A stretch of 64,000 nt of DNA. Origin: Mytilus californianus. Taxonomy: Eukaryota. The notes under the pieces are model-generated. The model searched no databases. It was not told the origin of the DNA and worked only from the letters and a program-made list of their open reading frames with translations. Positions 6,240 to 28,900 of the stretch are shown here, piece after piece. The stretch lies in the NCBI RefSeq assembly GCF_021869535.1, contig NW_026262679.1, positions 50,096,001-50,160,000 on the forward strand, given 5' to 3'. A program made the translations under genes and the position numbers. Numbering within the stretch: the stretch's first letter is position 1; each line of letters starts with the position of its first letter.

Positions 6240-9055
6240 TTTATGACCAATGCGGTATCAACACATATAGTCACACTCCTGTTTCTGCCATCTTAAACGT
6301 TCAGGTTAAGTCTAGCAAAGTGTCAAAGATAAAAGAATCGGACAGAAAAATTCAGTGGTCAAAATAAAATTTGGATTACTTTCAAGAAACGCTTCATAAT
6401 GAGCTACAAATCCTTACAAAACAAGACCTAACAATCACAGACTGCTTTCAATCTCTAATGGCATTACTTCTCAAAGCCTCAAATGTCTCTACTACTGCAA
6501 TAGTCATTCAGCTGAATTTAAGGGCCCTCGCTGGAAAACTTCTCCACAGTTACATCTTTTTTTGAGAAAAACCAGAGAAGAATTTAGAATTTTGGTATCA
6601 AATGGCAGTCCTGAAGAAACACTCCAATATAATAAAAGATTACAGCTCAAAGAGGTATATGACGTCAACTTTGTAAAGAAAGATATCTTGATCGAAAATC
6701 CCTCTATGAACAAATTATGGATAATCCAATCACAGATTTATTTTATCTGATCAGAAGAAAATCAGAGGAAATTCCTCGGCGAAACTCAGTTGCATCTCCG
6801 TGAAGGAGAATGATTTTTCCACAGATTTTGAAGAATAGAGGCTGTGTTTTTTTTGGGTTTTTTTTTTTTAACACTTCGAAGATTTTGTTGTCACAAAGGA
6901 CAATAACAATAACGCTGACTTCCTTGATTTATGCAACTCTAGACACGAATTTATTTCAAATATCTATGCTGCAAACAAAAGTAAGTTTCAACCAGTGACT
7001 GCTCTAGGGGTAGAAAATGCAATTTCAAGTCTGAATACCGGTAAAGCCTGTGACGAATTCGGAATTTTAGCAGAACATTCGAAAGCTTCTGGTCATATAC
7101 TTATACCGTATTTAACAACTCTGTTTACGAAATTTTGACGACAAGACAGGTTCCAGATATCTTAAAAGGAGCACTCTTATTTCCCGTCTAAAAGAAACAA
7201 AAAGATTCAAGAATAATGAACAATTACCGTGGTATAACAGTAACCCCAGTATTTACAAAACTGTTTGAATGAGTTTTACTTCCATAAATATCTTGTAACT
7301 TCATTCAATGTTTTCTATATTTTGGATTCACATCAGGGTTATCGATGTTTCTGGCCGCACTCCTTGTTTCAGAATAAAACGTGTCAAAGGCAGAATTAAA
7401 AATTATACCTTCATTTGGTCTATTTTTCGTCACATTAGATAGATATATATAGTCAGAAGGCATTTGACGTCGTCAATCGCATCATAATGTTGGACAAATT
7501 CTATGAAACAGGAATTCATCCCACTCTCTGGTCCGTAGTAAAAGATTTATACCATGGTATATATTCTAAAATAAAATTGGCAGGAGGGATAAGTGATCCG
7601 TTCCTAATAATACAAGGCGTCCGTCAGGTAGATCTTAACAGAGTGCTGCAGGATGATAAATTTGGACTTACACTAGGAAATATCTCCAGCAACACCGACG
7701 AGCTTCAATGCATGTTGACTACATTAAATCAACATACACTTCGAGATAGAGTCTCAATTCATCCTAAGAAAACAAATGCCGTCATATTAAAAAAAAACTC
7801 AAAGCTGTCAATTGTCGTACCTTATATGGACACTATAGGTGATGCACATATTTCTCCAACTAATCATACTGTGTATCTTGGGACTATTAGATCTGAAAGC
7901 AAAGAGAACGTTTTAATTAATATTGAAGACCTATTAGTCTGGCAAGACGTACAATGTATGCTCTTACATGTATAAACACTGCAATGCATGGCTCAAATAA
8001 CCCCATCGTTGCTTACAAGATAAACCGTTCTTATGTTCTACCAAAATTGTTATATGGAATTGAAATGCTTCCTTTGAACAAAACAACTACAAACATTCTT
8101 GCTAAATTTCATAATGATGTTCTCCGGAAAATTCAAACATCTCAACAATGACTGCATTATAGGCTGTTTACCTTCTTCTAGGTGGCCTCCCAATAGGCTG
8201 AGATACATCGACGTCAGCTCTGTTTCTTATATCATAGTAAAGTCTGCATTAATAAAATTATTCAATATCTATTTCGAAGGCAACTTGTTATGAATTCAGA
8301 TAACATGAATAGCTTAAAGCTTCTTTTGACAAGAAAATGACACTCTGAAATTTTATGATTTACCTACTATTGAAGAAATCAAACAGACTTTGAGTCTTAA
8401 TTAGCTTGGAAATTCCATATAAAACAAACAGTCTATAATAAATTATCAGACTCACTCCTTGTATAGGCTTCAACCAAATCTTCCTTAATATATGTTTAGT
8501 TAAAAGAACTGAAAATTGGCCAGTCCCATCTTGTATGTAGATCTCTACAGTCCACATTGTCAGACGTCATTAAAGGTATTACAAAATGTAGATTGGTTAC
8601 CAAAACATTTATTACCCAATCCGAAAAATCAAGATTCGGCAAAGAGGGAGCCAGTTCTATGTGTCAATTATGTCTTACTGAGGATGAAGGTATTGCTTAT
8701 TTCTTATTAAGATGTTCAGCTTTACATGATATCCACAGGATGTACTATACAAAGTTTAAAGATCTGACTATCTCATATATGGGTCAAAGAAATTGGCAAA
8801 CTCGTTTTGTGACAAAAGATTGATGAATATATTGTCAAATTAATAGTGGACTCAGTTTATAGAAATTTATTCAGTGATGAAAACCAAATTCTTGAAGTTA
8901 CCAATCTCCAACTTCATGGTTAAAGACTAAAAACATGATTTCGTGTTTAAAGACTGTCTATACTAAAATCGCTCAATTGCGAATTAAATTATTTGCTGGT
9001 CAGCTGGGCTTCTCTACGCTAAACCAATAGCAATCGTATAAATAAATAAATAAGC
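6240..9055 (+). mobile_element. Decayed non-LTR retrotransposon (RTE-X/L2-like LINE): endonuclease end, RT, C-terminal CxxC knuckle, (AAAT)n tail
   Basis: Fragments NNYRGITVTP, KAFDVVN, QGVRQ, YRINRSYVLPKLLYG-like segment, CQLCLTEDEGIAYFLLRC; many frameshifts; ATAAATAAATAAATAA near 9038-9053. Confidence 0.8.
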
Positions 9056-9490: not shown

Positions 9491-9947
9491 CTATTTTCGT
9501 TGCCACTTATGGTGTTTTAATTCATTGGATTTTATGAAATTATCATGATGATACCGAGAGGTATTTTTAACAATTTAGTGGACCACTATGTTAACTCTAA
9601 TGTTTTTAACGAAAAGTTAAGCTTACTGAATTCTTGGTGTCCCATAGCTGGGAGTACAATACGAAGATAAGAAGAAGTAGTATCATTGCTTTCTCTCCCC
9701 TTACTTATATTTCCCCTGAGCCCGCCAAAACCCAGAAGCTGTCAGACAATTCAATTCTAAAGCCGACAAAAGGCATTATATTTATCCTTCCTGCACTGAA
9801 GGCATGGAAATAGAGGATTATGTAAGACTTAACATTATATTTTCTTGCAAGAAAAACTGATGTGACCATGACCCCAAAATTATTGATCATCGGCATCGAA
9901 TGCCATTATTTATCCTGCACTCGTTCCATTTGTGCAGCTAAAATGCA

Positions 9948-12556
9948 TTTTTAGGTCTAAAGGGCCAAGTGTGCTTTTCTCATCACTTGGCGTCTGTCGT
10001 CCGTCGTCTTTTAAATTTTTATTAAAACTTCTATGAAACTACCAGGCCAAGTTTGATTAAAAATCATACTTGGACACAATCATCATTGCATTGGGGTATC
10101 CCGCAATGGTGGTAAGTCGTGCACTTAAGGACATTTTTTATTTTATTTTTCTGTGGACTTAGCTTTGTTTTTTTATTAGTGTGTATTGTCAAGCTTGGTT
10201 ACTCATAATTGTTTCTCAGTCACTGAATGTACGATGTTGTTCCATACTGGAGCAGCTGACCTGGTTTGTTTACATTCAAATTCTAATGGCTTCAAAACCA
10301 CGTGACACATTGAATCGTGATGTCCAATCAAATTGCGCTATTGTCAATTAGGGGATTTTTTAGTCTACGGCAATTACATTATTTGTTTGTATGATATTGC
10401 TTTGAAATAGTTTGCAATAAATTGGGGGTTTATTCAATAGGAAACCTCATTATTAGCCATGAAATTTGACATCAATGGAATTTTATATGAATATTTACTT
10501 ATGGTCAAAATATCGATTTCTTTATATTGAACCAAAATTTATTTTTATGAAAAACATATGAATATTTTTTTTTATTAACCTACTCTATATTCCTGAACAA
10601 AAATATGGCATGATTATCGTTTGTTTCCCAAAGTTTTTCTTTCAATTTGGATGGGTTTTTTTCGCGGGAAAATCGCGTAAGACGTAAGGTGCTTGCCATT
10701 TTGAAATTCTTAAAAATACGATTTGCTTGGCCTGTTCGGTCTGCAATTAGGATTGATGACGCTTAATGGAATGTAAACAAAGCAATGGGGGCCGGAAAAG
10801 GGATTTTCTGAAGTTCTAGAATGTTTTTAGGCATTCGGAAGTCAGGTTTGAAACGGCCATTAGAAAATTGGCATTTTTGTACAATACTTTAGAATAACAA
10901 TGAAAACATATCTTTAGAAATGTTTTTTTATTTAGAAGAGTAGAAAAAATGTATTCTGCACTAATTGTGTACGCTGGTTATTAGCGTAGTGACGTCAATG
11001 TGGAGTTTTCCTGTGTGATAAGTACAATAACAAAATCCGAACAAACCAACATTATGACAGATTATAGACTACAGTAGGATATCTAGTTGAAAAAATGTGT
11101 TCTATGACCTGACCAGCCAACCAAGATGGCCCGCATGGCTAAAAATAGAACACAGGGGTAAAATGCAAGTTTTGCCTATTATTTTGAAAACAGCTATAAA
11201 TAGAGAAAATCTGATAAGGGGCAAAACTGTTCGTATTTAAAACAAAAAAGGTATTGTGTTCTTTCATGTCAAAAACTGTTTGATGACTTCTTATAGGAGT
11301 TATTGCCCTTAAATGACAAATTTTTAAAAAAAAATTTAATTTTTGCCTTTTATCGTTTATCTGGAAAATTATAATAGATTGACAGAAAATTGAATTAGCA
11401 AAAATGATTTCCGTAATCGGCCTTGTATAATTCGCACTGGTTCATTGACCGCACCCCCCTTCTCGCCAGGAGAATTCAGGTAAAAAAACTTTTTGAAACT
11501 GTTTGAAACCGTCTAATGAAACTCCGATAATTTGAAATCGTGTGTGATCGTATGAGGTATTTTCATGGAAAAACCTGTTTTCCATCATCAAATAGAAGCT
11601 GAAAATGCTTGTACATGTAAATGATTCTAGAACACTTCATGAGTGTTAAAATAAGTCAAAATCACAAAAAAAAAAAATTTAGAAACTTGTATGTTTAAAC
11701 TGGAAGTTCGAATAGCACGTGTAAATGAAAATAGATACGGTGAGAGTATAGGAAAAGCCGTACTTAATAGATATCACTAGAATTTCTACTTTGAAAGTAA
11801 AACAGTTCCATCCTTAAGTAAAATAATGTTTAACATATCTATCACATTAATGTTTGAAGGATCTTAAGCTAAAACAAAACACATGCGTCAGTATGAAACA
11901 CCAAAACGGAACCAATAACCAATTACGTTTTGTAGTTTATACATCGTTACAGTATGCTTAAGCTGATTCCCGACTGACTTCTACACTTTTTTCATTCCGT
12001 TAAATTCAAGTATATTTCAGTTTATTTTATGCAATGCAGTGAAAAGAAACAAGAAATTTGTAGTGATTCTGAAGCATTTAATTTTGAAATTTATCAGTTT
12101 ATTTTTGATATTGAATAAAATTACTTACATATTAATATGGATTAGGTAAAATTATTAGTTTTGAAAATGATGAATGCCCTCTACAATTTCAATAACAAAC
12201 ATGGCGGAATGTAATACAAACCTCGCGAAATCGAATTTTTCTCTTATTTTTTTCTTATCGTACTCTATAGTCCGCACCCCTGTCTGGCAGGTTCAATTTT
12301 GGAGAACTCGTTATTGCAGTTATTGCCCTTTAATGATCATTTTTGGGGCATTTTTTGCATATTATCTTAAAAATTATAATAGATAAATAGAAACTTTAAA
12401 AAGGAAAAATTATCAGCAGGATAATTTTTGCAAATATGTCGACATGACTGAAATTGTCTCTTAATAGAGTTATTCCCCTTTAATGATGAATTTTACTAAA
12501 AATGGCTATTGTTGAAGATGTAGGTAAGCGACACAGGCTCTGAAGAGCTTGTAGTT
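9948..12556 (+). mobile_element. Helentron-type non-autonomous element (HINE) carrying nested insertions at about 10108-11083 and 11410-12310
   Basis: 5' TTTTAGG...CTTTTCTCATCACTTGGCGTCTGTCGTCCGTCGTC; 3' GTAGGTAAGCGACACAGGCTCTGAAGAGCTTGTAGTT; body collinear with 19903-20990. Confidence 0.65.
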
Positions 12557-15087
12557 GTTATTGTAAAGGTGGATTATTATTATTCCCCTGGAATTAATGT
12601 TTTTGTTATCAACAGAAAGCACCAGGTGCTATCAGAGGGTACAAGACAACTTGTCCTTGTACCAACTCATACCTATACCAATTTGTTCCAATTTTAATGT
12701 ATCATTTTATTAGATAATTCATAAATTTTGAATTTTATAATTGATCTTTCCAAGACATGTAGTATGCATTGTGTCTGATCTTAAAAAGCAGCAACTAAAC
12801 TACGTTTTATGATTAATAAGTTTTTGGGATATATATAGACTTCTGATGGTAGTTTCTGAGGAATTTGGAACTTGACAAGGTACTTATATACTCCAATAAC
12901 AAAATGAAATTTAAAAGGTGGTCAACTCAAGTGGGAGTTCCCCTAGATATCATACATAACTTGTCCTACACTTTTTCTAACTTTCATAAAGAATATAAGA
13001 GATTTAATGTGGAAGTATTTTTCATACTGCAGAAATTTAATGAAAATGCATTTAAAAGTATCATGCAGTACACTTAATTGAAGGACAAAGTATTTCAAGT
13101 CTTATTATTAAATAGTGAAAATTATGTGCAAGTTGTTTTTGAACTGATTTTTGTTGGCCATGGTGTGTGTTGGAAGTATTTTTTTTAGGTTATCATCATG
13201 ATCATGTTTATATCAGAGGACTTCACACTATTATTTATATGAAAACATGCAATGCATTTTACTGACTTTGAAATGTAAAACTTTAAAGTCATATTTGTTC
13301 TTTTACTTAAATATGTGATTGGAAAATATAATAAACACCAATTTTCTCAGCTTGTAGGTTGACTGTATATATGATCACTAGTTATTATGTAATTATAATT
13401 TCAAATCAACTAATCTTTTTTTCTATGTTTATAAATTTTATATAATAGAAAATAACTTCTATATTATTTATATTGCATATGAATACAACAAAAATTGTGT
13501 TTGAGTTAGTAAAAGTACGAGTTAGTAAAAATTGGATACTAGTTGGTCAATAATTTAAGAGTTGTCAAAGTTTACATGTACATGGATCCCTGTCGGAAAG
13601 TTTTACAGACCGGTATCAGGTCCATTCGCCTTAATTACATGTTTGTCCGAGGTCCATTAGCCCAAGGTTTGTTCACCCTATTTCTTTTGGTATATAGGTT
13701 TTTGTCTCTCCTGCGACTAAAGTCTCAGAAAGTGAGATATAGGTGTTGCTTTTCAGGCGACGGCGGCAGAGGATGCATCAATAATTTTTAAGTTTTCTGC
13801 TAAAGTCAGTTCAACGGGAACAACTTGTGATAGACCAATGATATTTTCTATAAAGTTGCATTACTATCACATGTATCAGTACATATCAGTTTGACAACTA
13901 TTTCAAGGCTCTACCCTCTAGGTCATGCATGATGGTCCAGTAACTTTCAATCAATTAACAAATTTCAATGATATGTTTTCTGATAAAGTTAGTTTGATAG
14001 GAACTACTTACAATAGACAATATTTTCTATAAAGTTACATTGCTATCTGTACATCTCAGTTTGTCAACCATTTCAGGCCCTACCCAAGAGTTGGTCCAGC
14101 GACTTTCAATTAATTAGCAATGTTGCTGTCCATCAGATTGTCTTTTTCTAAATTTTATGCCGACAGGCGAGACATATCTCTGTGTCAACAGTTTATTATA
14201 TCAAATACTTTGTATTCCTGCACATGCTCAGTTGGACAGTGCATTTTTTTTTGCAAATCAAAGAAAAAAATATCTGGTAGCAATAATACAAAATAAATAT
14301 TTCGAAATTTTCATCACACTATACAAATCTTTGATTATACCAGAGACATATATAATACAATTAGACCTGGATCCTAACGGAACACACTTTTAGATGCCTA
14401 CTGGCTGGCTACCCTTTCTTTTAAAATTGTTAACGAAGTTTAAATAAAATTATTAAGCACTTTTGTTAACAATTTTATTGTAAGCAATATTATCATAAAT
14501 AGGTAACATATATATACAAATATAGAGACAGCTATATACTTCACACTAATCTCAAGTAAATATTTATATTAATATATTCAACAACCCTGCATACCTAAAG
14601 TATCCTCTTCCTAGGATCAGTTACTGCAGTTAGACATGTTAGACGTAATCAATGTTGGTTCACCCTATCCTGCCTAATTTTAAAATAGTTTGATGTCTTT
14701 GAAATTGGAAGTTTTTGCCAGTTTTCTTGGACATTGTGTAGCATTATTTTTGAGATTTGAAAATTTTACATCTAAACAAAAGTTTTTCCATTTTGCAGTT
14801 GCAAGTCAACATAACATAGATTCAACTTAGCATATATTGTAACTTAAAGTAAACATTTTGAGGACTTGATTCATCATCATGCTGTCTTAACATTAAAAGC
14901 TTCAGCATTAGTATATGACAGCTGAGGCTATTCATACACATACATGCATGTGTATGCTACATGTTGGTTAGATTAAGCTGATTTATTTAAAGTGGATTGG
15001 TAAGCATGGTAAGTCCATTTGTTTTCTTGTTATGTGTTATATTTTACTTATATTAAATCACAACTGTTTTTTAATTTTTAGGCATGG

Positions 15088-18000
15088 ATGGCAAATTACA
15101 ATCAAAGAGCCTTGCTGGTCAGGGTTCTATGCAATTTAGAAGACACACAATGTTGCAGGTCACAGGACAATACAATTGAAAGTGTAAAATTTTTCACTAG
15201 AGAAAAGGATCAGTCTGAGACATCAGAAGTAGTGTATGATTGCCACGATTCCTTTGATCAAAGACCCTTGGATAATTTTTATGAGACAATAAACTCTTTT
15301 TTGGAACCATTTGAGCAATCTGATATTACATCAGAATACTGGAAGGATATATTCAGATGTCTAGAGCTATATGACTTTAAGTATGAAAAAGTTGACAAAG
15401 TAGAAATGTGGTTACCCAAAAAGAATCCAATGTCTGACAAGGACTTAGAAGAGGCATATGCAAAGATGTCAACAGGTAAAATATACAATGTTGCCATTGT
15501 GCAATCATATATGCATATTATGTATCTTCACATCCATACACATATAAAAATAACTTTTATAAGGAGTTGTTGTATGATTCCCAATTAGACAGCTATCTAC
15601 CAAAGTTCAAATGAAGTGGATGTAAGCAATTATAGGCAACCATATGGTTTACGTCTGTGTGTCCGGTCCAAATCATCCTGATTTCCGCCTATTTTTTCTG
15701 CATTGAAAAGCCCAAATTTCGGCACCATTTTTCCATGATGAAAAATAAGTCCTAATCCCTGCACCTTTCTCATTACATAATGAAAAAGTCCTAATTTCTG
15801 CTCTAAAAAAAAACTGAAGTCAGAATTTTTGCACCATCTCCAACAAACAGCACAGAAAAAGTGTGAAACTCTACACTGACGGGGAAATCTCCTTTTACCT
15901 TTTATAAAAGGGGCAACAAAGGTTTAAAGCTGGATGTACATGATGTAGCAATAAACAGAGTCTGTAGATAATAATACAATATTGTTTATTATGTATAATT
16001 TTAATAAAATACGAATCTTTTTAAGTCATTTATTTAAGGTCATGAAGGTAAAAGTTGTTTTAGATACATGTACATATGACTTCCCATTCTCCTATAAAGA
16101 AGACCTGAAAGTCTGGTACAGTTTTGTTGCTTAATACAAGTATTTATTTAAGTACATATTGAATGTAAAAGTAAAGTATAAAACATAAAACTTCAAAACA
16201 CTATCATTACTATATTACTGTGACTTGACTGTAAGTGTTGCTCTCCACCTATTGCAATTTATTCAAAATTCTGACCAAATTGCAATTTGTTTTATTAAAC
16301 TGAACTATTCAACTGGTCAGATATTTTTACAAATTGCTGTAGAAATCCACAGTCACGTTGTGAAAGTGCAAGGTGATAAAATAAAGCATACTTTCAATCC
16401 TATAACATGTATAAGACTTTAATTCCACTTCAATGATATTATGAAAAATTTGTCTAACAATTTCTATACAACATTTATTGTAATTGTCATGCTAAAGGTG
16501 ATAGGCAGTAATTTTGAATTGCTATAAAAATGTCCAAACTGAGCTTTCATACAATTTTTCTTTCAAAAAATCTTCTATATTCATAAGAATCAGACATCAT
16601 TTGAATTAAAACATCTTATATACAGTAAATAAATGTGAAATTTCAATAAGTTGTTAGTAAATTTCCATGAAATTAATCATTTTTCTTTCAAAATGTCTTC
16701 TCTATTCATAAGAATAATGATTTTAGATTATCTCCCATGGAAACTTAACAGCGTATTTTAATTTAATAATTTCACATATATTTTACTGAATATAAATATA
16801 AATATAAATTTGACATTAAAACTTCTACATAGTTTACATGTTCAAGTTTGTGATTAGGTCAGTTTAAGGGGAACAACTAGCGGTAGGTTTCATTTTCATG
16901 GAGATTATACGGCCCCACCCCCTAATCATGGTTCATTGACTTTGAAACTTTCACATAGTTCACAAGTGAAAGTCTGTGTTTAGGTTAGTATAAAGGGAAC
17001 CACTTATGATAAGTCAATGGTATTTGGTATGCAGTTTTATAAGCATTGGCATTTCACATTTCCATGGAGGTTATTTTGTCCGGCACCTTCAATCATGGTT
17101 CATTGACTTTGAATGATTTGCATAGTTTATTTATGTTTAAATATTGCCATTTTAATTTCTATATTTGCATTATACAATCAAAATTACAAAAAGTGTTACC
17201 CAGAGGCAACATACAAGATCATGTCTTGCATCGTTTGCAGCCAAATTGAGTTTTATAGCTCATCTAGACCGAAGGTCAATTTGAGCTGTTGGCATCACTT
17301 TGCATTCATCTGTTTGAAAAGTGTTCACATATCTTATTTTAAGAACCACAGTGCCAATTTTAACCAAACTTGGCAGGCATGATGACTGTTCAATGGTCTT
17401 TACATGATTGTGATTTTGGTGCCAATTAGAAATCAAACATGGCCGCCAGGGACAGATAGGCTGTGCTGATTGGTTAATCTTTTAAAATCATCTTTTGAAT
17501 CAATAAGTGGTATGCATAAATCTATAGATGGTCCTCTACCTAAATTGAAATTTTAATTTTGATCAGAAATTCAAGATGGCTGCTATTGACGAACATTATA
17601 GTTTAACATAGGGAAAATTTTTGGAAATTCACTTTAAAATCTTATAATTTAACTATCTTGATCAGAAAAATTCCAATATCAATTGGTTACAGTGAAAGGT
17701 TCTAAATAGTAATAATAACATCATGCAGCTATTAGTCTATTACTACATGTTTTATATATTTTCAGAACAGAGACAATATGTTTCATCATTTAAGACAGCA
17801 TTACAAACAGATATGAATAATGGTCGAGCTAAAAACTGGATTGAGGTATTGATGAAAATACTTCTGAGATGTCTTGGGAGTGATGATATGTGTGGCTCTG
17901 CCACAAATCGGCATGACAGCATCAACACTGCATTGGAGACGGTTTTTGGCGATCTTGATACCCCGTTCACACAGATGGAGTATAATGCACCTTACTCTAG

Positions 18001-18520
18001 TACACCCTCAAGTACCTCTTCATCTTTATCAAGCCAGTCTTCATTAAATCTGGAGTCATCAGAAACTGAATCTTCACCGGGTTGTATAGAGGAAGTCAAG
18101 GTTTCAAGACACACAATAGTTCCAGATTACTGTGTCGTGCTGCCTAATTTTCCTGGTATCTTTCCAATAGTTTTTGAACTGAAACGTGCACATCAGGAAT
18201 CTCATGCAATCTTCCAAAATATACAACAAATGTTGTCTAAACTTTTCTACCAGGATGTTGTGTTTGGCATAGTTGTTTCACCCAGATTATTTCAACTATC
18301 AGTTATTATAAAACAGGGAAAAGATCTTCATTTTGCAAGTACAAACAATATTTACATTTACAAAAATAAGAATCAAGTTAAAACACTTGATTTGGGAGAA
18401 TTGAATAAAATGTATACTTTTATTTATCGAGTGTTAAAGTGGGCAAGGAAAACTAAATGCTTGTTGAAAAGTCAGGACAGATGTGAGGGAAAAGAGGACA
18501 GCTGTAATGGAAAAGGATGA
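15088..18520 (+). CDS. Uncharacterised 380-aa protein with C-terminal PD-(D/E)xK (restriction endonuclease-like) fold motifs; join(15088..15475,17766..18520)
   Basis: Acceptor TTTTAG at 15081. Phase-1 donor ACAG/GTAAAA at 15475 joins the phase-1 acceptor TTTCAG/AACAG at 17766 in frame (MST-E-QRQY). Exon 2 has WIEVL ... VPDYCVV ... IVFELKR ... QNIQQM ... VFGIVVS. Both exons are stop-free although the surroundings are AT-rich repeat debris. Confidence 0.75.
16870..17700 (+). mobile_element. Degenerate Helentron-type element remnants in the intron of the nuclease-like gene
   Basis: TTTATAGCTCATCTAGACCGAAGGTCAATTTGAGC...CATCACTT near 17252 resembles the HINE 5' end; AAACATGGCCGCC and TTCAAGATGGCTGC motifs are typical of these bodies. 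Confidence 0.45.
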
Positions 18521-19735: not shown

Positions 19736-21050
19736 GGGTCTGGATGGGGGTTCCTTCATTTCTGTATATATATTCTTTAAATTTTTGGCCATTTTTCTCT
19801 ATTCTTTAATTTTTTAACCTTTTTTCTCAATTCTTTATATTTAAGCACCCCATTATTCTCTATTCTTTTTTTTTTTTGGTCCAATTTTTCTCTAATCTTT
19901 ACTTTTTAGCTCACCTGGCCTTTTCTCATCACTTGGCATCTGTCGTTAACTTTTACAAAAAATCTTCTCCTCTGCAACTATTGGGCCAAATTTAACCAAT
20001 ATTGGTCACAATCATTATTGGGGTATGTAATTTAAAAAATGTGTTCGATGACCCAGCCATTTAGGGGTAAAATGCAAGTTTTGCCTATTATTTTGAAAAC
20101 TGCTATAAATAGAGAAAATCTGACATGAGCAAAAATGTTCAGACTATTGAACTCTACTGATTGTTTATTCACTTCAAAACTGTCAAATGAATTCTTACAG
20201 GAGTTTTTATTCACTTCAAAACTGTCAAACGACTTCTTATAGGAGTTATTGCCCTAAAAAGAGGAATTTTACCTTTTTAAAAAAATTTTGCCTATTATCT
20301 CGAAAATTATAATAGATAGACAAAAACTTTAAATAGCATAAATGACTACACCCAGACAACATCTACAAATAAGTCTCATGGCTGAAATTTTCAGTCGACT
20401 CCTTATTAGAGTTATTGCCCGATAATGACGATTTTTACTATTTTTTTTTTCATTTCAGTCTAATATCTTAAAAACTATATTAGATAGCTAGAAACTGTAA
20501 ATAGCAAAAATGATCAGCAAGACAAGATCTATAAATAATACTAATGGCCTAAATCTTAAGTCAACTTGCTATTGGAGTTATTGCCCTTTAATGATAATTT
20601 TTCCCATTTTTGCCTAATATCTTGAAAACAGTAATAGGTAGATAGAAATTTTAAATAGCTCAAATGATTAGCAAGACAAGATCCACAAATATGCTTAAAT
20701 GGCAGAAATCTGCAGTTGACTCGTTATTGGAGTTATTGCCCTTTGATGATAATTTTTAACATTTTTTTTTTTGCATTTTTTGCCTTTTATCTTGAAAACT
20801 ATAATAGACAAATATAAACTTTAAAAAGGAAAATTATCGGCAGGATAAGATCTACAAATATGTCAACATGACTGAAATTGTCAGTTATCTCTTAAAAGAG
20901 TTATTTCCCTTTAATGATGATTTTTTACTCAAAATTGGCTATTGTTGAAGATACAGGTGAGCGACACAGGCTCTTTAGAGCCTCTAGTTTTATCTTTATT
21001 CTGTATTTTTTTGTCCATTATTCTCTATTCTGTAAACCCTATCCAGATCC
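19736..21050. mobile_element. MITE with short TIRs, host of the HINE at 19903-20990
   Basis: GGGTCTGGATGGGG ... CCCTATCCAGATCC; ATTCTCTATTCT sub-repeats on both sides of the nested element. Confidence 0.5.
19903..20990 (+). mobile_element. Helentron-type non-autonomous element (HINE)
   Basis: Subterminal inverted repeat AGCTCACCTG (19908) / CAGGTGAGCG (20954), 3' hairpin AGGCTC-TTTA-GAGCCT (20968-20983), T-rich ends, internal GAGTTATTGCCCT repeats. Confidence 0.8.
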
Positions 21051-22480: not shown

Positions 22481-22945
22481 TTGCCCCTTTAAAGATTTTT
22501 TTATAAAGTTGATGCATCGGAAGCATTTTTCTGGATCTACCTTACCCTGGAACGCTCAAACTCAAGTATTAAGCATTGCTAACTGTATTTGTAATATCCT
22601 TTATTTCAAATTCAAATGGAAAGATGCGATTAACATAGTCACTTTAAATTACTCAGTGAGAGAACACCATTTTAAAGCGGAACTTGAAGTTAGAGAATAC
22701 ATACACTTGCTTATTTTCATTCTGTTAAGAAGCTCCTTATTGGGTCGGTCTTATACCATTAAACATCTAGAAAATGACCTTGACCATTCACCTTGATCTT
22801 AATTCCCGAATGGGCTTATTAACTTAAATTAAGAGACCCTTAACTAACACCCTAAAAAAATAAGATTTAGACGGATCATTCACTGACAAACTATGTGAAA
22901 CCTGTGATTACTTTAACACATGTGTTATAGTAGTCTCAGGTCAAA

Positions 22946-24350
22946 CACAGAAAGACAACATGGTTTTCGATCATCTCGCTCCTGTGAAACTCAGCTAATA
23001 TCATTTATTCAAGATCTTGCAAATTCAAATAATAAAAACATTCAAACAGACATCATAATAATGGATTTTGCAAAAGCATTTGATAAAGTTTCACACCACC
23101 ATCTCATGTATAAAATCGGTTTCTACGGTATAATTTGCAATGCATTACATTGGATTCAAGATTTTTTAACAAACAGAACACAAACAGTAGTCCTTGAAGG
23201 TGAAACATCAAATAAAATTCCTGTAACATCTGGGGTACCTCAAGGCACAGTGCTTGGTCCAATTTTATTCTTAATATTTATAAATGATTTGGCAGAATAT
23301 ATTGAACATAGTACATTAAGATTGTTCGCAGATGACAGTATCATTTATAGGGAAATTAAAAAACCAGATGACACATATAAATTACAGTCTGACTTGGAAG
23401 CGGCCGGCAGATGGGAGCAGGACTGGCTCATGCATTTTCACCCTGATAAGTGCAACATTCTCAGTGTAACTCAAAAACGCAAACCTTTAGACTTCACTTA
23501 TAAATTACACAATCACTCTCTAGAAAAAGTTGACTCTACAAAATATTTAGGCCTAACTCTTCAATCAAATTTAAAATGGGACAAACATATCAATAACATG
23601 ACATCAAAAGCAAATCAGTCTCTTGGATTTATTCGTAGAAACCTTAAAATAGCCTCACCTAAAGTTAAAGCACATGCATTTAAAGCTCTTGTCCGACCAA
23701 AACTAGAGTACTGCTCAACTATTTGGGATCCACATCAAAAACAGCAAATTTCACAAATTGAAAAAGTTCAGAGAAGAGCAGCGCGCTTCTCATGCAACCG
23801 CTTCCATAACACCAGCTCAGTTACTGAAATGATGACAGACTTAAATTGGTACCCACTTGAAATTAGGCGTTTACGATACAGACTTGTCTTCTTCTACAAA
23901 ATTATACATGAAATTGTTGCAGTCCCTACATTTAACCTTTTGATCCCACTAGACAATAGAACTAGACATAGCAATCCACACTCATTTAGGCAAATACAAA
24001 CATCTAAAGACAGTTATAAATATTCATTTTATCCACGAACAGTTATAGATTGGAATCTTCTGCCACAACAAATAGTATCATGCAGTACAGTACAGGGATT
24101 CAAGAGTATGATCTCAGAATCTGCTCTCATCCCCATTTTCTATCCCTAACTATTTTGTTATCAAATGTATATAGTTTTATCTAAATGAAATTTTACAAAT
24201 GCACATACATTATTTTGATTTTTTGATTTTGTTTCTTTTTATTTTTCTTGCTACAATGTAAATTATAAAATTTTATAGTCGACGCCCGGCGAATAATCTT
24301 CAATAATTGAAGGATCGCTAGAAACTTAAAGAAGAAGAAGAAGAAGAAGA
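22946..24350 (+). mobile_element. 5'-truncated CR1/L2-group LINE with an open RT C-terminal frame, 3' UTR and (GAA)n tail
   Basis: ORF 22920-24149: QHGFR, DFAKAFDKV, SGVPQGTVLGP, FADD, YKYSFYPRTVIDWNLLP; GAAGAAGAA tail at 24331-24350. Confidence 0.92.
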
Positions 24351-25911: not shown

Positions 25912-28900
25912 TTATTTGGTATACAACGGTATAATGACTAGAATAGTCATTATAGTGATAAATGTAGCAATAACATATACTATAAAAGATGCCCGTTCTA
26001 CTGTTTCCGCTATAAAATACCATTCCTGTTTCAATAACATGTTTTGCTGATGAATTTTCAATTCATTGTCAGTATCTTCGCTGTCATCGTAATCATTCTT
26101 TTCATCGTTATTTTCATTGTCTTCATCATGATGATGGCGTTCCGTTCGCACTAAACCTTTTCTTAGCGCAAGCTTGTAAGATCTCCGCAATTTTTGCCGA
26201 TTCAGTCGAAATGGATCTTCGTGATTGCATGGTTTAAGATTACTCTCTGATGTACTGTTAGTTGGTACGTCAGGACAAAGAGGTTCTTTTTCGTTCAGCA
26301 AATCTGCAAGTTCCAGAATTTCGTCTTCAATTTCGGGTGTTTTCTTATCCGGAATTACCGGTTCAGTAAAATGCACTTTACCGCTATCATATTCCTTAGT
26401 ACGTAAATTTAAATCTTGGTTTGATTTATCGGAACACAAGTAAAACTTGTCAACGCGAGACGAAAACTTTGAACAAGTAATTTTTCCTAAAAATCCTTGA
26501 CATACTTTAGACAGTAAAGGAGGAACGTCTGGTATCGGATATCGTTTTCCCCTGTTTTTAATGTTCATGACCAACGTCGACATAATAAGGGACGTACAGT
26601 TGAAAGTCATAACTAAAAATGTTAGAATTCCTAGAAAAGAAGAAAAAAAACGGTCATTCAAAAATTTTCGTATAATCTGCATGCAGAAATAAACAAACAA
26701 CAAAACAGCCAGGATAATTTCGCTGTTTTAAAATCTAACGAATGCTGGGTAATATATTGACAGTCGTACATCAAAACGTTGTGATTGGCTTACAACGTCC
26801 TAAACAATTGGAATTAAACCAATGACGTGCCGTTATTTTCGTTTTTGGGTACGAACAATGAAATTACCCACAAGTCTTTAGATTTAAAAATGTGTCTTTT
26901 AATGTGAAAAGGCAATATCCCTTTCTGTGGAGAAAAGGTACAATTTTTATGTGTTTTATTCATTTAGAAAGATAACTCGAGAATTGCAATTAAATCCTCT
27001 TTTTAGACATATTTTTTCGGATTTTATTTGTGTGTTTTACATGATAATAACAATAGTTTTCCTCTGTTTTAGCAGCAAACTGGCAGACGACTTGATAAGT
27101 TCGGGTCAAACTTACTTGTATTGTCATGCCGTATAAGGTGTTAAATTGTGGTATATTGTTCGTGGCCATCAAGTTATTTTAAAGTTTCAAGGAGATCGGA
27201 ATAGCTCGCGCTTTGTCATTGGTATTGACATTCTCAAACATAAAAAGGAAACAGACGCCATTATTCTTTCCTGAGAAGCACAGGAAAGTCGTTTTTGGTG
27301 GTCCACTGAGCCTTTTTAATAATAAACATTATAATGGTTTACTTTTATAAATTTTGACTTGGATGGAAAGTTGTCTCATTGGCACTCATACCACATCTTC
27401 TTATATCTATTTACTTTATTCGTATCTTTTGTACAACAGCAAATTAAAACATATAACCCGAAATGATCTAATTATCAACATTGCAATAATTTCGAGTTTA
27501 CTTTTAGCAAGTGCAAATAATGTTTGATACAGAGATGTACAGTGCGGGATTGTTTTTAGTTGCCTGAAATACGATAACATTTTTTAGGGGATTGAAAAAG
27601 TTGAAAAACTACAACCGAATAATTCTGAGTGCTCACTTTATATGTTTGTTGTTTTCAGCGTTTTAAGGGAGGGGTGTTAATTTCCCTCAGTTTTGCTTCT
27701 GTTCATTTGTTTTTGTTTTCTTTGTGGTATATATATATGCAAAATAAAAAAGAAATTCAAATATAATTTCAAGATAGCAAAGTGTTGTAAGAAGGTGTTT
27801 TAAAATCTGAATATACCTAGGATGGGCGTTGTATTGGTGTCCGGAACGTTGTCTGAAATTAACAGCTGCAGAACATACAGAGTAAGGAAGACGGTCAGTC
27901 CGATTGATATCTTATCCCCATGATGTGACGGTAGGCAAAACGAAAACAACGATAGAATACTCAGCAACATTGTTGGTGCTATCACAATATATTCATAGTA
28001 TCTAGACTTCCTCTTCAAATTGATCGTTAATACGACCATTGGGTGATTACCGTTTCCAGGACAGCATTTTGAGTCGACAACTTCTCGCCTGAGGCTCGCA
28101 TCTTTCAAATCAAATTCGCTATTAACCACATAGTCATCTAAACCTGGTTTTGTTTGGACGGGTTGAAGGTCTAACTGAGTTTCATCATAAATCCACGATC
28201 CAAAATGTATTTCACATATCTGTTCGTCGTACGGAAAGAATGTAGCATCCACACGACAGACGCTTTTGATCATTAAAGGTATGAGCCACGTGACGTGACC
28301 CTCGTTCTGAATCATCAATCTTCCGCCAGTTACATTAACAAAGTCATCGATTTTGTTGCCAGCACTGTTCACAAGAAAAAATGCATGTTTAAGAAATAAA
28401 ATATATGAAAAGCAATGAAAGAATGGAAAATTGTTTAAAAATAGTGCTACTATCTCAGGTATAGAGACAAAATGGGAATGGAAACAATCAGAATACAATG
28501 AGCGCCAAACAGAGTGAGACGGGATTACCATATCCTGCTCTACATGTATCACCCGTTACACGATTCAAAAGTTGCATTTGTTTACTCCATTTCGTAAAAA
28601 ACGTATGTTATGATCTCCAAGAGCACAACAAGTGTTTCTGAAATACGTTCGAGGTAAAAAAAATATCATCCAGTAGATAGTGTCAAATATGAAGTAAGTT
28701 TAAATTTCTCATATAGGTAATAGTAAGTCGGGCAAAAACAAGATATTTGGAGCGAAAACATTCGGAACCAAATGAACTCAAAAACGGAGTGAAACCCCTT
28801 ACGTCGACATTGTAATCTCCAAACTCCTGCCATGTAACGCCATAAAGTTGAACATGACGAAAGCTGTAATGTTAGATGGACAAATATAGACCTGTTGAAG

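Follow-up and report, generated by a model that had tools for sequence, protein, structure and literature searches.

An expressed three-exon gene of the mussel Mytilus californianus encodes a protein with a PD-(D/E)xK nuclease fold and a putative active site

The PD-(D/E)xK superfamily is very large, and it often gains new families. In HsdR and RecB-type nucleases a QxxxY helix completes the active site. To our knowledge, there are few stand-alone nucleases of the HsdR or type IIG kind in animal genomes. Restriction-endonuclease-like (REase) domains reportedly also occur in effectors of the Crinkler and RHS type, in fungi, oomycetes and other eukaryotes. Here we analyse LOC127734788, a gene of the mussel Mytilus californianus whose product can be compared with all of these proteins. 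It lies on the plus strand of a 64,000-nucleotide stretch of contig NW_026262679.1 (positions 50,096,001 to 50,160,000, assembly GCF_021869535.1). We call this whole stretch the window, and positions given without a contig label are counted from its first letter. Two described systems are especially instructive for the comparison. The restriction enzyme BpuSI has the motif spacing PD-x15-ExK, and cleavage requires its residues D60 and E76, which bind Mn (PMC3185434). The ribosomal proteins mL37 and mL65 are described as repurposed endonucleases that stabilise rRNA (PMC8998825).

We find that the C-terminal half of the mussel protein has a PD-(D/E)xK nuclease fold, similar to HsdR-N and type IIG enzymes and with a glutamine-bearing helix (Q-helix). 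This assignment, made on a predicted model, is secure because structure, shape, language-model and weak Pfam searches agree. From sequence and model, we judge the protein most likely to be an active metal (Mg)-dependent DNA endonuclease, encoded by a three-exon host gene of a vertically inherited lophotrochozoan family (probability about 0.6).

The nuclease domain comprises residues ~139-370 of 388 and lies wholly within the last coding exon (17766-18520 through the stop codon). An AlphaFold model of the last-exon product, based on an alignment of 48 sequences, has a predicted local distance difference test score (pLDDT) of 86.9 and a predicted template modelling score of 0.80. In last-exon numbering, the model has helices at residues 18-36 and 141-157 and strands at 111-117, 121-125, 131-138 and 164-170. 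These elements form the alpha-beta-beta-beta-alpha-beta core of the superfamily. A first, sequence-only reading of the window had already recognised a PD-(D/E)xK core with a Q-helix, and both the model and its structural matches agree with it.

The best structural matches are restriction enzymes of type IIG/IIL and type I. When 48,161 chains are compared by VIA-align, the nuclease domain of BpuSI comes first (3s1s, Z 12.2, 151 residues, 3.6 A). It is followed by DrdV (7lo5, Z 10.7), mL65 (Z 10.0), mL37 (Z 9.8), TT1808 (Z 9.8) and an HsdR fragment (3h1t, Z 8.5), with a further HsdR structure at Z 6.7 (2w00). Lower rows hold NucC, SgrAI, NgoMIV, McrC, Can2, Hjc, EcoRI and others; nearly all of the 30 rows after the top matches, and almost every row down to Z 5, are proteins of the PD-(D/E)xK superfamily. 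A shape search of the Atlas leads to clusters labelled HSDR_N, PDDEXK_12, Crinkler-linked and mL37. The HSDR_N and Crinkler-linked clusters are also listed by the language-model search.

The weak Pfam matches of individual relatives, all below threshold, are enriched for the clan of these nucleases: HSDR_N, TnsA_N, RE_XamI, RE_HaeIII and PDDEXK_12. For HSDR_N the match is found in 2 of 48 relatives and stays below the Pfam gathering threshold (best E 0.0012). The window's protein has no HSDR_N (PF04313) match, nor does a six-frame scan of the genome yield one. A viral structure library contains nothing better than E 8e-3, with poor template modelling (TM) scores. We rejected a profile match to designed pentatricopeptide repeat proteins (E 4e-9) as an artefact: the score accumulates over a short GIVPDVVTY repeat, and none of the stretches passes by itself.

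The mussel protein shares the motif order of restriction-enzyme cleavage domains: a helix, PD, 15 to 16 residues, ExK and then the Q-bearing helix. In the mussel protein the spacing is PD-x16-ExK. Unlike restriction enzymes, the mussel protein is eukaryotic, its gene contains introns, and it has no methyltransferase, helicase or specificity module. It carries instead a family-specific acidic N-terminal domain and a disordered loop rich in serine and threonine (S/T). The active-site helix also differs, since it reads QxxxQ and not QxxxY, and the glutamate of helix alpha-1 (E21 in BpuSI) is not conserved in this family.

In the model, the D, ExK and Q residues occupy strands and helix in the canonical arrangement. 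Residues are numbered here as in the 388-amino-acid (aa) protein, and conservation is scored over up to 48 aligned relatives. The P-D of the putative catalytic motif is encoded at 18122-18127 (plus strand); D258, which is D120 of the last-exon product, stands at the start of strand 121-125. The E-L-K (E275 and K277; 18176-18184, plus strand) stands at the end of strand 131-138. The glutamines of the Q-helix (Q288-x3-Q292-M, then Q300; 18215-18253, plus strand) fall on the helix modelled at 141-157.

These positions are well conserved. D258 is present in 44 of 46 relatives and replaced by E in the remaining two, while E275 is found in 41 and K277 in 42 of 47. Among the glutamines, Q288 is kept in 43, Q292 in 47 and Q300 in 44 of 48 relatives. 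Further downstream, G305 (47/48) and K320 (45/46) are nearly invariant. Taken together, D258, E275-x-K277 and Q288xxxQ292 are conserved in 87-98% of the 48 relatives, so the D, ExK and Q residues picked out in the sequence-only reading are indeed kept in homologues. The same reading had included a glutamate on the first helix (WIEVL). This residue exists in the window's protein, but it is not a feature of the family (8 of 39 relatives). What relatives share on this helix is a D-M-x-N-G-x-x-K motif.

A different pattern is seen in a paralogue elsewhere in the genome (C35:17697942-17700038; other contigs carry our own labels). Here PE replaces PD, and a proline stands at the first glutamine of the helix (pattern E-E-K-P-Q). 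Because two species, M. californianus and M. coruscus, keep the pattern, it may represent a variant of the active site and not decay.

We propose the following mechanism. D258 and E275 would hold a divalent metal, K277 would orient the water that attacks, and two glutamines of the next helix, Q288 and Q292, would complete the site. The fold and the conserved residues are our grounds for proposing this chemistry. If the five residues have these roles, the protein most likely cuts DNA. Regulation or targeting of the enzyme could fall to either the acidic N-terminal domain or the disordered S/T-rich loop, which may be phosphorylated.

Only this family has the acidic N-terminal domain, which spans about 130 aa. 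The N-terminal 138 residues have an isoelectric point (pI) of 4.4 and the nuclease core is basic (pI 9.6). Conserved motifs of the N-terminal domain include W..Y.QRAL, VKF and several F/W positions. At each of the six loci in the genome it occurs together with the nuclease domain, and an exhaustive profile search finds it only in proteins of this nuclease family. The linker (17987-18097, plus strand; last-exon residues 74-110) is rich in S, T and E and is predicted to be disordered from its composition and pLDDT. Serine and threonine make up 18 of its 37 residues, pLDDT falls below 50 at residues 84-98, and its length varies among relatives. The linker interrupts the nuclease domain, with helix alpha-1 and its hairpin on one side and the core strands on the other. 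Both the acidic N-terminal half and the S/T-rich linker had been noted from the sequence, and both descriptions hold.

We also considered the N-terminal domain as a forkhead or winged-helix domain (PF00250). The register is suggestive, and the candidate was rejected: a profile of the domain matches FOXM1 chains at no better than E 0.3, and comparison with 17 mussel forkhead domains by hhalign yields a probability of 0.2%. Forkhead domains proper are abundant on the contig of the window (C99). Between 17.77 and 18.02 Mb (C99:17.77-18.02 Mb), more than 20 open frames with such domains (PF00250, E 1e-27 to 1e-32) are crowded into 250 kb, on both strands; here a Fox gene has undergone a lineage-specific tandem expansion.

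LOC127734788 is an expressed host gene with three coding exons, all on the plus strand. The sequence-only reading had joined 15088-15475 to 17766-18520 across one GT-AG intron (1143 nt, 380 codons plus stop). The sequence, contig junctions and RNA bear this out. The splice junction (15475/17766) is present in Logan contigs from two public runs (X15 and X2), with the interval excised exactly and with GT..AG ends; in both contigs the joint was read as 15472>17763, cut +3. The junction contig of X15 is 1156 nt long (78 nt and 1079 nt either side), and that of X2 is 179 nt long (86 and 93 nt). In a third run (X21), stranded raw RNA reads cover both exons on a single strand only at a depth of 1.5-4, and the depth is zero across the unique parts of intron 15476-17765.

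The extent of the gene had been only partly recognised. The 380 aa are correct but begin at an internal methionine (ATG at 15088), because there is an upstream coding exon that the earlier reading missed. Mytilus orthologues have additional N-terminal residues, which tblastn places at 9738-9830 of the window. This first coding exon (9735-9821), supported by tblastn, the sequence and the RefSeq N-terminus MEIEDYAW, has its ATG at 9804-9806, followed after six codons (MEIEDY) by a GT donor at 9822. Upstream the frame is open to ~9735; M. californianus lacks the ATG used there by the M. coruscus model. The acceptor AG lies at 15080-15081, so the next exon starts at 15082 and not at 15088. The X15 contig contains 100 nt upstream of 15078 that come from outside the compared stretch, as expected for an upstream exon. 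The full product has 388 aa, MEIEDYAW plus the 380 aa read before. It is identical at every residue to RefSeq XP_052100757.1 (uncharacterized protein LOC127734788, Mytilus californianus). The gene had been taken as possibly undescribed, yet it was already annotated, albeit without a name.

The remaining parts of the gene follow from these boundaries. A common interspersed element has one copy (~9974-12556) in intron 1 (9822-15081, phase 0, GT..AG). The second coding exon (15082-15475), exon 1 of the earlier reading, encodes the acidic N-terminal domain and has a stranded RNA depth of 3-4. Intron 2 (15476-17765), with GT at 15476 and AG at 17765, splits a Glu codon between G and AA. The 3' untranslated region extends from 18521 to about 18841, the position that the X15 contig reaches; the X2 contig reaches 18811. 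Within intron 2, the summed contig depth in RNA-type runs rises to thousands at two high-copy repeats (15546-15686 and 16815-17237). These repeat reads continue into unrelated sequence and are therefore transcribed elsewhere in the genome, not from the intron.

The protein belongs to a small, unnamed lophotrochozoan family that is inherited vertically. A word-based search finds Mytilus proteins only. An exhaustive profile search yields 58 cluster representatives, 48 of which form the alignment used for the model and for conservation. A second word-based profile search adds no further taxa and no domain fusions. Named relatives come from Mytilus species, Pecten maximus, Lineus longissimus (Nemertea) and Lingula anatina (Brachiopoda), and all are annotated as uncharacterized. 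The family is thus not confined to bivalves, contrary to the earlier suggestion.

Three lines of evidence show that the gene is old, vertically inherited and under purifying selection. First, M. coruscus has a collinear locus in which the three coding exons are the same and the introns longer. Second, compared with the M. coruscus orthologue, the synonymous divergence (dS) is 0.147 and the nonsynonymous divergence (dN) 0.027, a dN/dS ratio of 0.18, with similar values for the N-terminal domain and the nuclease core. Third, both intron positions are common to Pecten maximus and Lineus longissimus, and that of intron 2 is also found in the paralogues.

The M. californianus genome contains five intron-bearing loci of the family and one intronless, frame-broken copy. 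Two of the paralogues, C24:49394318-49405236 (on a 66-Mb contig) and C148:714889-724583 (on a 0.8-Mb contig), are nearly identical; RefSeq lists them as LOC127721947 and LOC127710359. Either one of them is an uncollapsed haplotig or the duplication is very recent. The intronless paralogue (C99:75513817-75514969) lies on the same contig as the window gene, 25 Mb off, and its frame breaks after LKCLQS. A Logan-assembled protein of 597 aa reads through that break and adds an MG-initiated, S/P-rich N-terminal extension of ~175 aa. This protein, whose source species is unrecorded, clusters at an identity of at least 90% with M. coruscus proteins of the intronless paralogue. The intronless copy may therefore be a retrogene whose sequence in this genome is broken or mis-assembled. 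A distant branch of the same domain is seen at C165:90299460-90300128 (SDLVI...EIK...Q..EYML..HFQ..LG...K), with an hhalign probability of 91% against the family profile. This branch has three copies (also C165:51725489 and C165:88924700), one of them with stop codons.

Several observations weigh against an active endonuclease. Two of the best structural matches, mL65 and mL37, are non-catalytic ribosomal proteins. In Foldseek, chains of mL65 and mL37 take all nine top places among PDB entries (E ~2e-3, probability 0.98-1.0). These two proteins also rank first (Z 9.0 and 8.9) in a fold search with a trimmed full-length model; the full-length AlphaFold model behind it, from a shallow alignment of 13 rows, is poor (pLDDT 42.6) and served for this search only. 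A few relatives have lost E or K of the ExK motif (e.g. E-x-M, K-x-T or V-x-K), so not every member of the family depends on catalysis. Neither exon product nor the family profiles have a significant Pfam or PDB sequence match. For the N-terminal domain there is no match in the language-model search of the Atlas and no recognised fold, and the N-terminal parts of 22 relatives have no Pfam match even at E up to 1. Expression is low in X21, the single raw RNA run examined. Finally, we place D258, E275, K277 and Q288 together in space from their secondary-structure positions only.

Accordingly, the protein could have a nuclease fold without cleaving anything and act as a nucleic-acid-binding or scaffolding protein, like the mitoribosomal pair mL37/mL65. 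The high structural scores of mL65 and mL37, the history of this pair as repurposed endonucleases and the missing E or K in some family members all speak for this explanation. Both proteins (PDCD9 family, PF07147) are animal proteins with the same fold, and in the full-length model the match goes past the core. This family, unlike mL37 and mL65, retains the catalytic set: the full D/ExK/Q set is present in the window's protein and in the large majority of relatives across three phyla. In addition, there is no PF07147 match in the window's protein or its relatives. A separate PDCD9-family gene is present on the same contig (C99:22.51-22.53 Mb), so the window gene cannot itself encode the mussel's mL37 or mL65. 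We consider a loss of cleavage unlikely, though it is the main alternative.

An active endonuclease remains our preferred reading. A bolder form of it is a catalytically intact, lophotrochozoan-wide nuclease that works in genome defence or DNA metabolism and is maybe the kind of enzyme ancestral to mL37 and mL65. This form is speculative, and we hold it to be rather improbable.

Alternatively, the protein could be a Crinkler-type or toxin-like effector nuclease directed against pathogens or competitors. Crinkler-type effectors are likewise eukaryotic and likewise carry a stand-alone REase-fold domain at the C-terminus, behind a non-catalytic N-terminal region. In the Atlas, the best query TM score (0.58 over 182 residues) comes from a Mucoromycota cluster; 17% of its members have a Crinkler header. 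The same cluster appears in the language-model search (0.83). Several family genes of Lineus longissimus lie on one chromosome-scale contig. The similarity to the Crinkler-linked cluster is at the level of the fold only, without a link at the sequence level. Pfam detects no Crinkler header (PF20147) in the window's protein or in the N-terminal parts of 22 relatives, and no other trafficking domain. Read by eye, the N-terminus shows no hydrophobic stretch resembling a signal peptide. In contrast to such effectors, this family has few members; it is conserved and shows purifying selection instead of expansion and diversification. An effector role is very improbable.

The sequence-only reading had also raised the possibility that the nuclease is borne by a transposon, and had reported no transposase or terminal inverted repeats (TIRs) around it. 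The latter stands, as no transposase and no TIRs going with the gene are found within the window. Direct repeats (9974-12556 and 19920-20989) do lie on either side of the second and last coding exons, and we considered them as boundaries of a mobile unit. This was ruled out: both are same-orientation copies of a high-copy element of ~1.07 kb, with internal tandem units of ~155-170 bp. The element has 11,792 first-look candidates in the genome, its full-length copies are 75-88% identical, and the first coding exon lies outside the two copies. Least probable of all, then, is that the protein is the accessory nuclease of a DNA transposon, either still borne by the element or domesticated after a recent capture. 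In favour of this, repeats and reverse-transcriptase fragments surround the gene, the weak Pfam matches include TnsA_N and one paralogue is intronless. Against it, the flanking repeats are unrelated to the gene, there are only six loci, and the introns shared with Pecten and Lineus, the collinear M. coruscus locus and the low dN/dS mark a host gene. It is possible that an ancient domestication occurred before the lophotrochozoan radiation, leaving no trace.

The surroundings of the gene are rich in repeats. A 409-aa open frame at 22920-24149 (plus strand) contains an RVT_1 domain (E 1.5e-27). A second open frame of 162 aa (7487-7975, plus strand) has no Pfam match and was taken from its letters as a degenerate reverse-transcriptase fragment. 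Both look like retroelement debris. On the minus strand, 25912-28552 holds exons of a Cys-loop ligand-gated ion channel (Neur_chan_LBD, E 6e-24, and Neur_chan_memb), an ordinary host gene.

What is new here is a fold and a putative active site for an unnamed family. In other respects the result is modest, since the gene was annotated before and the superfamily is huge and already well known. Nevertheless, a fold and an active site that can be checked are now assigned to a family that has no Pfam model and was known only as uncharacterized proteins in mussels, scallops, ribbon worms and brachiopods. If the protein is indeed an active enzyme, its conservation in three phyla and under purifying selection would suggest that lophotrochozoans process nucleic acids in a step that is as yet unstudied.

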